Part shown: piece after piece, positions 6,178 to 12,510 of the stretch
How positions within the stretch are numbered: position 1 is the first letter of the stretch
Layout: every line of letters begins with the position of its first letter
From: Perkinsus chesapeaki ATCC PRA-425
Taxonomy: Eukaryota > Protista > Perkinsozoa
Assembly: GCA_013115145.1 (NCBI GenBank)
Contig: JAAPAO010000001.1
Location: 62,001 to 126,000, forward strand
Direction: 5' to 3'
Length of the DNA: 64,000 nt
Notes under the pieces: generated by a model
Database searches by the model: none
What the model was told of the DNA's origin: nothing
Seen by the model: only the letters and a program-made list of their open reading frames with translations
Program-made: the position numbers and the translations under genes

Positions 6178-8033
6178 ATGGTCGTATTAGATGTTTCCCA
6201 CCCTCTTCTCAAAGCTTCGGCTCCTATGCACTGGCAGCAGTGCACCAAAGGAGCATCCCACCCCTTTAGGGTATCCACGTTATATGTATCCTAGCATTCC
6301 TATCGCTACGGTGGCAACTTCCTGGACTATGTGGGACCAAAGGGATAATCCCAGCAAACCGCAGAATGCAATATATGAAGGTGATCTCCTTCTTAGCATC
6401 ATCCTCGCTGACGCCAATTCCTGTCCTTTACATTAGGACCACCTCTCTCACGGTATAGATCTTCCCCGAGTCAGTGAACTTCTAATACGAGCCGAGATTC
6501 TCACACACGCCTGGATGCGAGGGGAATTAAGGGACCCAAGCACTACCAAGAAAACCGATGATGTGAGATTGCTGCTCACTCACGCTCTTGACAGCGGAGT
6601 CGAATCTCAGGACGTCTTCACCAACCGTCTGGTTGAGATATGCGACATCGGGCTCTGCTCTGCCGTCATTGGTATCTTCGTACCAGCGCCACTGTCCACT
6701 ATGTGTCTGGCTATCTGTTGGTTCACCTATTGGATCCTCAAACGTTGCTGTGGTACCTTCCTCTGCCTCCAGTGGGACCAGCTACTGCTCGAATGCTCCG
6801 CCCTTGGATGCGCCCTATCTGTTCCACCACTGCAGCTCGGCGCCGTATGGAGTCTACGTATGCTGCTGTTTAAGCTCATCCTTTCATCTGGCATTTGCAA
6901 GATAGTCTCAGGCTGCCCGAAGTGGGCGTCCCTCACCGCTATGGACTATCACTTCTGGACCCAACCGTTACCCACAATTATCGGTTACCATCTCAATCGT
7001 AAACTGACCCCAGGGCTGAGCCGCCTCATGGTATGTTTCACGTTCTTCGTTCAGCTACTCCCGGTACCATGGTTGCTCCTTCTCCCGTATCCGTTCGGGG
7101 CCATGGGCGCTTCGCTGATAGGGCTCATGATGGTCCTCATTGCATTCACTGGCAACTACGGCTTCTTCAACTACCTTACGTGCGCACTGGCCCTCTCAGT
7201 ACCGTTCACATCGAGCAGTGAACGAGTCGAGCCGTATACTATCTTCGACGCTGTTGCTCTTTGCTATGGTTTGATCACCAGCCTCGGTGTCATCCAACCT
7301 TTGCTGTGCACATTGGACCTTCGTCATCCGGCTTGCGCTTGGGCGTCATCAATAAGTCAATTCCTCAGGCCAATGGCAATCAGCAGCGGATATGGTTTGT
7401 TTGCCAGGATGACCACCTTCCGAATGGAGCTCAACTTCGAGGTGGAGGTCTCGCCAAGTGGCGGCCCATGGCACGAGGTCATCTTCAAGCACAAACCAGT
7501 GGATCCGAATAACCCGCCATATTTTCTCCCTATCGGACACATGCCTAGACTGGACTGGCGCCTGTGGTTCGTACCGTTAGGGTTGGTGCGAGGTGCCCCG
7601 ATGCCTTCGTGGGTTGATACGTTCATCGAGAAGTTGTTAAAGCGAGAGCCCTGCGTTGTGAACGGAATTCTTCCCAAGCAATCTTTTGCTTGGGATGATG
7701 TAACCAGAGTTCGTGTCGTCCTTTGGAACTACAGCTTTGGAGACCGTGGCTGGGTTCGCGAAAGGCTTGATGTAAGTCCCGCTCACTTGGTCGTTAATGA
7801 TTTGTCACTAGCGATCTGGGCTTCGGTATCACCGTTGACCTTGTGTTTTGCCTGATCATCGCTGGTATGCTGTTGTTCATTGTCAGACACTGTACGTCGC
7901 ATCCCTCGATTCGCGAGGGGAGCTGATATGCAGAAGTCCGGAAAGCCTGTCCGAATCTTCCTCCTCCTGCCCTTCAGAGAGCAGCATGAGCTCCTCCGAG
8001 GAGCCTATTATCGTTCCCCTTCATGAATCATGA
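6178..8033 (+). CDS. LMF: Lipase maturation factor (LMF1/LMF2 family) ER membrane protein
   Basis: First exon ILAFLSLRWQLPGLCGTKGIIPA, then LLECSALG, FKLILSSGICK, WASLTAMDYHFWTQPLPT, IAFTGNYGFFNYLT, SGYGLFARMTTFR, FKHKP and GHMPRLDWRLWF, all LMF hallmarks. A GTAAGT donor near 7772 leads to a last exon ending at 8033. The exact start is uncertain. Confidence 0.9.
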
Positions 8034-8197
8034 CTATTATAACATACCATAAATGCGCCTATGCTAATCTTGTGATTTTAACAGGCTGATTAACACTTGT
8101 GTCGTATAGGCCGTCACATTCATTATCTAACGTTATCGTACAGTGTTGGGTGATAACTAGTAACTCAACCGATCATCGAATGACAACAACCGGATCA

Positions 8198-9336
8198 TCA
8201 TGTGAACAAACCAACTATGTGCTTCAAAGACCTATAATGTACAAACGCCCCGCCAGCGTTCTTCGGAGGCAGCGGAAGGACGCCGTTACGGAACGGTGCT
8301 GCTAAGGCGTGGACAGCCTCATGTGACATGCCCCATGGTGGAGAGTAGCAGCTGCAAAGAACTCCCTCTATAATGACATGGCCGCTAGGCAGAAGGGGGC
8401 AGGCTAAACCAGAGTCACTGAGCTCAATGGCTTGAACGGACTGGACCTTGTAGTTGAGGAGTTGGTGGTCTAAAGCGGAGAGCCTAACAAAAGTCACCGA
8501 CAATTTAAAAACTCGGTTTGGCATGGCTCACTTAAATACGGTCGTAGCGGTGCAGGACACTTGCTTGGCTGGAAGATATCCAAGATTGGTGGGTACAAGA
8601 TGCTCAGGGGAGAGATAAAGATCACCGGATGACGCTGTTGTAAGCCGGAGGAATCGATGACGTCTCTGAGGACCACTTAGCCCAGGGGCTGCCCGCCGTC
8701 CACGTACTTTTGGAGATGGAGGCTCATAATGCAGCCACCCGACAATAGGCTCGAAGTGGGGTTCCTGCGAAGCTGAGGAGCTGGTCAACACACAATCTCC
8801 AACGTCGATATCTGAGGTCATCATGAATCGGAACAGCTCTCATCTTGCCTACCGCAGAGGGGCGTCCACCCTCTTCCTTGGACGAACGCTCGACTCGTAA
8901 CAGGGAAGCACGTTGGCATCCTTCCACCACCTCCAGGCATCCTGACAACTGGATCGAGCAGTAGCGACTGCAAGCTTACATAGAATAGGCCCTTTGGACG
9001 GACGCCACACACTCGTGCGTGGCTAAGGCATCTCCCTGATAGGCAGCAGCAGCTCGTCACGGAGAAGGGTGACAATAAGCGGACCTTGAACTCTCTTTGA
9101 CACTCGCTGATGCAATCCTGCTCATCCCCACTGTTGCAGTCTAGCTTCCAGTCCTTGTTGTTCGCGGCAAAATAGATACGCTTGATCCTATCATCATGTC
9201 CAAGATAACCGTACTGGAAATATCCAGTAGACTCACCCGAAAGCCGTGGATAAAGGATCGTTATGATGGCACATGGTACTTGATGCGAATGTACTTGCAA
9301 TGCTATGATGAGGCTGATGACCGATATGGTGGGCAT
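8198..9336 (-). CDS. Secreted Hedgehog-type Hint + sterol-recognition region (Hog) autoprocessing precursor
   Basis: Signal peptide MPTISVISLIIALQVHS. The spliced Hint reads GGGGRMPT|CFPVTSRAFVQGRGWTPLCDIDVGDCVLT...GWLHYEP...LYLSPEHLV...AKQV...GLACPLLPSGHVIIEGVLCSCYS. An SRR-like segment follows: SHEAVHALAAPFR...VHYRSLKHI. Confidence 0.85.
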
Positions 9337-9551
9337 CGAGAGCCATTATGGCAGGCAAATACTTCCGGACATTCTGGCCATTAAAAAACACAAGGGACAG
9401 AGGTGTCGAGAGAATGTGACATGACAGTCCTTAACAAAGTGAATCATATGCGAAATCTCGGAGGCAATCTACTTTCAGTGAATTCAGCATCCTGTCTCGG
9501 CACACCCGCGGGATGCCTGACGGACGGTTCTTAGGCGACCACTGGAGCTTC

Positions 9552-10345
9552 TCACCGTGCTCTATGTTTTTTGACTCTCTTTTCCTCCTTAGCAATCCTC
9601 CTCCTTCTATGTCCGGGCCTCACACGCTCCTCTGCCTCTTGTCCGCTGCTCTCCCCATCCGACTCCACAACTTCATCGTTCGAGCATCGCGCTCTACCAG
9701 AGCTACCATTCGACTTTCTCCGATCGCGCTGGACTACCACGGCTGTTGGAACTGACCATGGCCACATCGCTCAAAGAACCCTCTGGCCACTCTCACGGGC
9801 CGTTGTGTATCCGAAGCTGGTCCGCCTGATCGACATGGAATCCTTGCTGGCGAGATCCTCCATTCGCCGATCGAGCTGAAGGAAGGATGAGGGGATGCTA
9901 CTGAGCACGACGCCTCGAACCTCGCGGTTGAGTTCTTCAGCATTAGCAATCCAACGGGATCGGCTTCCTGAGGTGCTGTTGCCGTCATCGTTATCTGATC
10001 ATGAAACTGTGTCGCAACCGGTATGTAAATTTCAGTGGCAAGAGCGCCTTTTCCAACACATTCAACGTTGGCACAGTGCTCAAACAATGTGATGGTGGCT
10101 GGAAGCAGCATCAGCAGCAGCATTGAGAGCAACTATAACACACAGCTCGTGTTCGATTCGCAGATATACGAGAAAACCTTCAATGCCTCTGACGATAGAA
10201 ACAGTAGAGTTCGCTGTAGTAAGGTTGACAAAACGCCCATCACATTATACAGAATCACGTACTGAACAAACTGCCAATTTATCAACTCACCAACCGATAA
10301 TCTTAATCAATAAAGCGCCTACCTTCATCACTATCATCATCAGGT
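9552..10345 (-). CDS. Hypothetical multi-exon protein with acidic then basic C-terminal tail (5' end may extend to about 10750)
   Basis: Exons splice in frame: YVILYNVMGVLSTLLQRTLLFLSSEALK|LLSMLLLMLLPA...KNSTARFE|LDRRMEDLASKD...GYTTA|LPTAVVVQRDRRK...HRRRRIAKEEKRVKKHRAR*. Confidence 0.45.
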
Positions 10346-11012
10346 CCACCTAGGCCTCCTGTTCCAGCCGACAACAGGCTCCTTAGGCTCCTAGACACGC
10401 TCAGCGTACTAGGTGCCGGTATGAATCTGCCGCGAAGTAGCGACCACTGGTGCCGACGAAAACTAAGTCTCCTACTTCACAATTTCGCCACGAAAGGGAG
10501 GCATTCCATTGCTAGATCCTCCGGGCGCAGCCCACAGGCTTTGGTAGAGAGCGACAACATTCAATGGCCCGTCTTGGGCCAAGGCACCGAACACGCGCTA
10601 GCAAAGAAGGTGGAAAGCGTGGTAAGAGAAGAGTGTGACTCACCCTAGATACCCTGATGATCATAAGTGACGGACGGCTGAGTAGTGAGCTCTCACGAAG
10701 ACCGCCGAGCAGAGTGTCATGGAGGACTTGAGGGGATAATCTGACAAGACACACACAGTTATGCTATATTAGGTATACAGCGAGTTATGCGAAAATGTGG
10801 TAGAGATTCCCCCGATGAACATAGGTTGAGCAGCTTCTAGTCATCTAGTCAACTTAAAAGGCTGCTCCGAGCCAGCTTATAAAATGGCACTGGCGAGACA
10901 CTCCATCATTGATGACCTGTTATGCACGATCCTTGCTGGCGCTGTTGCAGAGGTCCACGCCTTCTGGGCGGCCTATCAGGCAACAACTGTGCTTACAACT
11001 GGCTGAGTGATG

Positions 11013-12510
11013 TCATTGGTCTACCGTAGCGATCGAGTCCCCAGCTGATGATAAGCGGCAGGCTAATCTAGCTCTTATTCCCGCCTTCCCTTTTGTTCTC
11101 TCTTTCCTCCTGCTATTACTGAGTATACAGAACAATGACTGGAGAAGGAGTAGCACGTACCTCGAATAACTGCAACTGGACGGAGCACCAGTACGTCGAC
11201 CTTCTCGACTTGAAGCAGTTCGCCGACTGCTCCGCTCGATCTCTAGGGACGAGCTGCGGCCTTGCAACTATCCAAATACATCAACCTCGACACTCCACGG
11301 CCCTACTGCTCTGCCTTGAACTTCCCTCTCGTTGCTTGGTCTCCTAAAATTCACCCACTTTGCCCATCCAACTCCTGTGTGCCCTCTACCAGCGTTCCAC
11401 AACGGCGTCGTTACCCTCTATAGCCGCCGCTAACCTGGCCGCTTCATGGTACTTGAAGTTAGGGTCCAGTTTCCCCTCCACAACTCCGAGATACCTTCAG
11501 CAGTGCAATCAGGAACTCCGTGAACCCGGTGTCGCTCACCCGTCAATGCGAGCAGCCACACCGGCCAGGTCACCATTAACCCGGTTGAATCCGCCATCGA
11601 GACGGTCAGCGACCGGCATTAAGAGGCCCACAAATATCGACTGGGCCACACGACCGCAAGGGCCTCTGCACTCCGGCAACTGCGGCGGCATCTGCCACGT
11701 CATTAGCCGGGACACCTTATCAGCAGCAGAACCTTCCCCTCTTCTAGTTAGACTCACACAAGCGATTAATGACACAATCAAAGTTAACATCAACGTGCTC
11801 ATCTACAGTATATCATCTGCCAACTTGAATGCCGTTCCCCAGCGCTGTATTCCGCCCTCGCCTCGAGCGTGGGTCTCAATGATGTGCTGAGTTGCCAGCG
11901 ACTTCAGACGCTCTCGCCGCTCTATCCTAGACTTTCTTGCCGCCTCTGGACACTCTTCAAGGAGAATGCTTGCCGGCCTCCAGTCCCTGTCATAGTCGGA
12001 AGAGTATCCAACGAGTATCAACAATGCTGCAAGACCTACGATTTCCGAGGTTTCTCCTCCAAAGCTTGCAGAAGTGTATTAAGTTTCCTCTGTAGACTTT
12101 TCCTGGTATTGCAGTAGCCCACCCCTCCCTAACAGTTAGCCCATCACATTGAAGCAGCCCCGGCCTATCTCACCGTTATGTGGGTATCTATGATGGTGGC
12201 TGAGGGGTGCGGAGGCGATCCCCCTTGCTTGGCTGACGAGTGGTCGACTTGCTGAGTTCCCCGCTGCCTCCTTTCGGCCTGAAACTCCCTCCATTGCAGT
12301 CACCTTTACTACTGCCGCTACCTCCCCTCCAAAGGCACTGTACCGCATTCTCTCATTAATGCGAGGACCTCGTAAAGTCTCGTATGTTCTGTGACGGAAC
12401 ATGAGCCCCGAAATGGCCATCTTCCCCGTGCGATGGTGAAGATATTTACGCTGCAGCTCCAGCCGAGTGATAGCTGGTCGCTGCTGTCTTAATAGATTTG
12501 TATTATTCAT
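11013..12510 (-). CDS. Hypothetical multi-exon protein (3' end uncertain)
   Basis: A chain of GT-AG-bounded ORFs (12136-12510, 11803-12024, 11536-11802, then YLGVVEGKLDPNFKYHEAARLAAAIEG). No domain recognised. Confidence 0.45.

Follow-up and report, generated by a model that had tools for sequence, protein, structure and literature searches.

The minus strand of the window, by which we mean the whole 64,000-nucleotide stretch of DNA that was analysed, was confirmed to carry a real, intact Hog-type gene of the clam parasite Perkinsus chesapeaki. The Hog module is complete and occupies positions 8910 to 8198 in four exons. We consider it fairly probable that this is a functional gene for a stand-alone Hog-type autoprocessing precursor of about 293 residues, with a proposed transfer of a lipid, likely a sterol. 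The locus is already in the public record as KAF4678293.1 (UniProt A0A7J6N345; P0001 below), a P. chesapeaki "Hedgehog protein Hint domain-containing protein" of 948 aa with an automatic Hint annotation, and the gene adds to the already known protist Hog family. What is new is an orphan cargo under strong constraint, the absence of a signal peptide, the prevalence of a natural His as general base, and probable errors in the annotation. A search of the available literature found no paper on Perkinsus Hog proteins.

The gene was read on the minus strand between window positions 8100 and 10400. A preliminary description, made from the DNA letters, had proposed a complete Hint and sterol-recognition module with short introns in an alveolate-like genome, and the motifs on which it was based were all found on this strand. 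They comprise the GGGG linker, the cleavage site T-CFP, DIDVGDCVL, GWLHYEP, SPEHLV, ACPLL..GHVIIEGVLCSCYS, SHEAVHALAAPFR and VHYRSLKHI. The three introns within the module (8852-8812, 8707-8666 and 8531-8484) are 41 to 48 nt long and each begins with GT and ends with AG, and the whole gene has six GT-AG introns of 38 to 49 nt. The junctions that we placed from the window agreed with those of P0001, which contains every whole-codon exon block as an exact substring and which comes from a member of the phylum Perkinsozoa. The genome is alveolate, as had been proposed. Cargo exon 2 is bordered by introns of 49 nt, both GT-AG. On the plus strand, an LMF1-like gene (lipase maturation factor; 446-aa ORF) lies at window positions 6515-7855, convergent to the Hog gene. 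The features of the locus are listed in the table.

Table. Features of the Hog locus on the minus strand of the window, with the most likely start of the gene and the identity of each exon to the ortholog on contig L006
Feature	Position	Strand	P0001 residues or Pfam Hint profile positions	Content	Identity to L006
Upstream ORF stop TGA	9444..9446	-		Probable end of a separate upstream gene	
Likely first coding exon (cargo exon 1)	9237..9346	-	P0001 656-691 (exact substring)	ATG 9346-9344; variable His-rich N-terminus (leader) of ~37 aa, without a hydrophobic signal peptide	9/27
Cargo exon 2	9085..9187	-	P0001 693-726	Beta-hairpin and start of helix 1; three of the four Cys	34/34 (16 synonymous, 0 non-synonymous differences)
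Cargo exon 3	8980..9035	-	P0001 727-745	Helix 2; fourth Cys	17/18
Junction exon	8853..8941	-		GGGG linker, scissile Thr755-Cys756 (Cys codon 8910-8908), first Hint strands (motif A, CFP)	27/28
Hint exon B	8708..8811	-	Profile 31-88	DIDVGD and WLH (His802 codon 8731-8729)	25/33
Hint exon C	8532..8665	-		SPEH block (TxxH equivalent): Ser828, His831	31/44
End of Hint fold	8345..8483	-	Profile 120-161	ACPLL (drifted YAPLT), SCY motif J (Cys899)	
SRR/ARR tail	8198..8344	-	P0001 907-919 and 932-944	Motif K helix 1, loop, motif L helix 2, stop codon 8200-8198	56/93 (last exon, with SRR)

The ortholog used for comparison is carried by a 20-kb Logan contig (L006; run SRR12548988) of a Perkinsus-like relative, and was reached via an 89-aa fragment (P0009). 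It adjoins a convergent PF06762 LMF1-like gene, as in the window, so the locus is syntenic. Intron positions are conserved between the two genes, and the donor of the likely first coding exon (TTCGG/GTGAG) is kept in L006. Synonymous sites were saturated (pS 0.74-1.0), with dN ranging from 0 to 0.31 over the same exons. The conservation of the frames despite this saturation validates the exon frames and excludes an alternative frame. The preliminary description had conceded that transcripts using the frame DAWRWWKDANV would speak against the Hog reading; that frame was ruled out, because the CFP frame is identical to L006 at 27 of 28 residues. Unspliced read-through of the two cargo introns, for which frame 2 has no stop between 9345 and 8824, was also rejected. 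L006 has stops there and conserves the separate exon frame. The exon identities show that constraint is much stronger on the peptide beside the cut site than on the processing domain, and the Hog domain itself remains under purifying selection.

Membership of the Hog family was supported by several searches, with a match well beyond what chance would give. Spliced P0001 matched the Pfam Hint profile (PF01079), the HMM against which the preliminary description had proposed to check the protein, with 54.6 bits (E 1.4e-14; cut-off 29.7) over residues 755-901. In a six-frame search of the 41.7-Mb assembly this locus scored 43 bits (E 6.7e-10) against the same profile, and two of its exons matched separately, at the colinear profile positions given in the table. 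We then built a profile from two paralogs and the exons of the window gene. The all-against-all HMMER search that used it gave 2991 proteins at E <= 0.001, with P0001 as the top match and a dinoflagellate protein (Yihiella) as the closest named relative found. When the family profile was compared with solved structures, SHH and Drosophila Hh-C were the best matches (SHH 1e-10), and inteins reached E ~0.5. Single exons gave little in phmmer searches against the PDB (exon D matched SHH weakly, at E 0.058, and exon B had no match), so that only the profile was informative.

Conservation of individual columns was counted in an alignment of the window domain with its 129 closest relatives (130 sequences). 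Of the 101 relatives that reach the nucleophile column, 98 have the Cys and 97 the Phe that follows it. Both are kept here, in support of the nucleophile proposed earlier at T-C. The residue before the Cys varies widely among the relatives (Gly in 34, Thr in 5, and many others), and the Thr found here is unremarkable. The His of the T/S-x-x-H block is invariant (130/130), with Ser (66) or Thr (59) as the first residue; the window gene has SPEH, and HMMER aligned this block to LTAAHLLF of SHH. In the SCY motif J, Ser, Cys and Tyr occur in 130, 120 and 121 of the 130 sequences, and the window gene has SCYS. All four of the typical residues of motif K are retained (His, His, Pro and Arg, in 107, 115, 122 and 120 of 130), as are the three of motif L (Gly, His and Leu, in 101, 91 and 102 of 130). 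The motif K of the window family was aligned by HMMER to HSWAHRAFAPFR of human SHH (372-382).

The predicted structure agreed with the sequence evidence. The AF2 model of P0001:738-948 (pLDDT 87.4, pTM 0.85) consisted of a beta-rich Hint fold followed by a helix-loop-helix, with the tail helices at model residues 171-182 and 200-210. The Foldseek search of this model returned 6TYY, the D46H mutant of Hh-C, as the top match (E 2.6e-12, TM 0.89), and 1AT0, Drosophila Hh-C, as the next (E 2.2e-11, TM 0.88-0.89), both with an rmsd of 2.1 Å. Inteins ranked from the third place onward. The Drosophila HhC fold, to which the preliminary description had pointed for comparison, is thus the best structural counterpart of the domain. 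The Pfam Hint alignment ends at profile position 161, before the SRR, and the SRR was assigned on the basis of the family alignment and the AF2 model, the last 30 residues of which have pLDDT values of 55-71. Taking the Pfam score, the kept columns and the model together, the complete module proposed earlier, a Hint fold with an SRR/ARR helix-loop-helix, was upheld. The sequence and fold features of the Hog family (Bürglin 2008) are all present and the gene is therefore assigned to it, with an autocatalytic chemistry that is predicted only.

Within this family the gene can be set against several known systems. It has in common with animal Hedgehog-C (1AT0, SHH-C) the Hint fold (TM 0.88-0.89), the nucleophile Cys, the xxH block, the SCY loop and a first SRR helix of the HxxAHxAxAPxR type. 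In contrast to animal Hedgehog, it has no Hedge domain and no signal peptide, its SRR loop is shorter, and it has Thr for Gly before the Cys, His for the Asp base and Ser for Thr in TxxH. Pfam found only Hint in P0001 and had no match in residues 1-760, hence no Hedge domain. The Hedge domain, signal peptide and Asp base that mark Hedgehog proper are all absent. Inteins have the Hint fold and the N-terminal Cys nucleophile in common with the Perkinsus gene, which differs from them in having no C-extein and no terminal Asn step and in ending 47 residues after SCYS. The C-extein is missing because the frame stops right after the second SRR helix, and the gene is not classed as an intein.

Bürglin (2008, BMC Genomics 9:127) described Hog domains from dinoflagellates, Cryptosporidium and ciliates and did not list Perkinsus among the taxa. 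In those protist proteins, as in the gene described here, the N-terminal region is specific to the lineage and has conserved Cys, and CF..., TxxH, SCY and motif K come after it. The Cryptosporidium Hog proteins have a signal peptide, whereas the Perkinsus gene lacks one. In haptophyte Hogs the reported conservation pattern is the reverse of the one found here, in which conservation is much higher in the cargo than in the Hog domain.

The His of the WLH motif (His802) occupies the place that the general base Asp46/Asp303 has in Hedgehog, and HMMER aligned it to the Asp of SHH and to the His of the D46H mutant 6TYY. The preliminary description had likened this WLH form to nematode warthog/groundhog proteins. 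The His is not a special trait, since it is the majority state of the column (105/130, against 21/130 for Asp) and therefore the usual state in this protist-dominated neighbourhood. The Perkinsus paralogs examined all have W[LI]H. The His of 6TYY (Drosophila Hh-C D46H/D303H) was engineered, whereas that of the window gene and of the other sequences in the majority is natural. The D303H swap in Drosophila Hh kept the structure and cholesterolysis and widened sterol tolerance (review PMC9163320), so by analogy a His at this position would be compatible with sterol transfer.

The drift of YAPLT to ACPLL, which had been noted before, proved to be real. Thr is present at its column in 123 of the 130 sequences, and Leu occurs there once, in this gene only; the Tyr is replaced by Ala here, as in 2/130. 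Such changes at the near-invariant Thr and at the Tyr would be expected if this paralog, which diverges most among the five Hog loci, were decaying or catalytically dead, with the Hint fold serving a structural role only. The Pfam score of the locus, 43 bits against ~70 for the other two full loci of the genome, would fit the same explanation. However, neither the reading frame nor any of the six splice sites is disrupted, and no catalytic column has been lost. dN lies well below dS, which is saturated, and the junction exon is nearly identical between the species. The L006 ortholog also carries A-x-P-L-L, so the drift is a trait of the lineage, kept under selection, and no sign of decay. We regard a dead paralog as extremely improbable, and keep to a functional gene in what follows.

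The cargo, the part before the cut site, has about 100 residues: a His-rich leader that varies, a four-Cys core of 53 residues that is nearly invariant, and the GGGG linker. It is followed by the Hog domain of 193 residues, with the Hint fold and the helix-loop-helix adduct-recognition region. In the AF2 model of P0001:656-948, the His-rich leader was disordered (residues 1-36, pLDDT <50), and the core formed a beta-hairpin and two helices with the four Cys (residues 38-90, pLDDT 78-87). The Gly linker was floppy (residues 92-96, pLDDT <50), and the Hint fold began at about residue 101 with pLDDT >90. The cargo had no match in Pfam even at E 1, no paralog was found for it in a search of its own genome, and a search of the ESM Atlas gave no usable match. 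Its sole relative found was in the P. olseni ortholog, the public model FOZ60_006380 (P0152), with ~80% identity. Four Cys in a cargo that lacks a signal peptide are unusual if the protein is cytosolic. Metal binding, suggested by the His-rich leader and the Cys/His pattern, is a guess.

The start of the gene affects what the cargo is. The public 948-aa model runs from window position 12510, and it probably fuses two genes, judging from the comparison with L006 and P. olseni. Past the annotated donor, the upstream reading frame stays conserved over a further nine codons, with synonymous changes, and its TGA (9446-9444) stands at the equivalent place in L006. The GT of the annotated donor is GC in L006, and DNA conservation collapses beyond the TGA. 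In addition, P0152 starts as a separate protein at a Met equivalent to ATG 9346. We infer that the Hog gene most likely starts at this ATG and encodes a stand-alone protein of ~293 aa. These observations weigh against the possibility that the public model is correct and that the Hog domain ends a large intracellular protein with a cargo of 755 residues instead of 100. The GenBank/UniProt model does join both parts, and L006 conserves the upstream exons, which lie ~100 nt away on the same strand; even so, we consider a single 948-aa protein quite unlikely, and take the shorter one as the likely product of the Hog gene.

The upstream reading frame is a multi-exon ORF of ~636 aa at window positions 9444-12510 on the minus strand, with an identity to L006 of 35-60% in blocks and its conserved TGA ~100 nt 5' of the Hog start. 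A Pfam search of this ORF found no domain. Spliced-leader trans-splicing and an operon-like cluster with co-transcription have been reported in Perkinsus (PMC2868825), which makes such a close spacing of genes on the same strand credible. Another start, ATG 9336 in frame 2, would give a signal-like sequence (MPTISVISLIIALQVHS...), but L006 has no equivalent open hydrophobic reading; moreover, the frame-1 donor is conserved in L006 and the P. olseni model uses the other frame, and this start was rejected. P0152 follows the ortholog correctly as far as ...WLHYEAPSAK and then runs into an unspliced intron and a shifted frame. As annotated, this mis-spliced model is without most of the Hint fold and the SRR.

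The preliminary description had called the product a secreted precursor. No signal peptide was found at the ATG 9346 start or at the start of the 948-aa model, and secretion is therefore unsupported. For the same reason, processing would be expected on the cytosolic side, unless the protein is targeted unconventionally. By analogy with Hedgehog, Cys756 would attack the Thr755 carbonyl, aided by the SxxH block, to give a thioester. A hydroxyl-bearing lipid held at the interface of the Hint fold and the helices might then be activated by His802 and attack the thioester. This lipid would most likely be a sterol taken up by the parasite. The small conserved peptide would be released with the lipid esterified at its C-terminus, and the Hog domain would be discarded. 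We know of no protist Hog protein for which there is biochemical evidence of cleavage or of an adduct.

A sterol, if that is what the adduct is, would come from the host or from the medium. Squalene synthase, squalene epoxidase and oxidosqualene cyclase were not matched in an exon-by-exon search of the fragmented assembly of 3544 contigs. P. marinus has been reported to need dietary sterol, in a paper that also notes conflicting hints (PMC2868825). Sterol ligation using host sterol, as the preliminary description had supposed, may be considered plausible.

Self-cleavage could also take place without a sterol. Water, or else a sugar, a small alcohol, a different lipid or the like acting as nucleophile, would then resolve the thioester, and the Hog domain would only release the peptide or tag it differently. 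Outside true Hedgehogs, Bürglin 2008 (BMC Genomics 9:127) deliberately names the tail the adduct recognition region (ARR), because the adduct of these Hog tails is not known. The tail of the window gene is short: 49 residues follow the SC of SCY, where the median is 66. The last exon, which holds it, is the least conserved of the Hog exons (56/93), the motif L His is Tyr in L006, and YAPLT has drifted. All of this would agree with a nucleophile other than a sterol. On the other hand, the gene has motifs K and L, by which Hedgehog-like SRRs are recognised, the AF2 model has the helix-loop-helix, and a His base supports sterol transfer in Drosophila Hh-C. We therefore think cleavage without sterol somewhat unlikely, and continue to favour a precursor that transfers a lipid.

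The most specific form of the proposal, which we put forward as improbable in its entirety, is that a non-secreted precursor esterifies scavenged host sterol onto the near-invariant four-Cys core, giving a possibly metal-binding peptide anchored to the cytosolic face of a membrane. If true, no sterol-modified protein would have been known outside animals before this one, and a parasite auxotrophic for sterol would be putting that of its host to direct molecular use.

Catalogues of non-animal Hog domains go back almost twenty years, yet to our knowledge none of these domains has a known adduct or cargo function. The locus offers a compact test case in this respect, with a precursor of ~293 aa and a cargo that is far more constrained than the processing domain. 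The organism can be cultured and reportedly needs external sterol. Should sterol transfer be shown, it would settle whether protein sterolation predates animals. The analysis also flags the probable gene fusion in KAF4678293.1 and the mis-spliced P. olseni model.

The six-frame search revealed four further Hint loci in the assembly, two on contig C3031 with ~70 bits and two partial ones. The two on C3031, L001 (G000:C3031:9219-9617, plus strand) and L002 (G000:C3031:17352-17972, minus strand), are convergent Hog paralogs 8 kb apart. Both have WLH, an intact YAP[LM]T and a 14-residue insertion before motif K, with seemingly only short Lys/His-rich peptides before the Cys. The fifth Hog gene, L005 (G000:C2937:46078-46176, minus strand), adjoins an amino-acid-transporter-like gene. 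It has a signal-peptide-like start (MRRKLSSALLAQILL...) and a Cys-rich cargo, unlike the window gene, together with CFPGN, WIH and a motif J reading SRYA, in which the Cys is lost. Two metagenomic proteins (P0033 and P0007) are close relatives. One of them, of 974 aa, has a reprolysin-type metalloprotease upstream of the Hog domain, and the other, of 798 aa, has two Hint-type modules.
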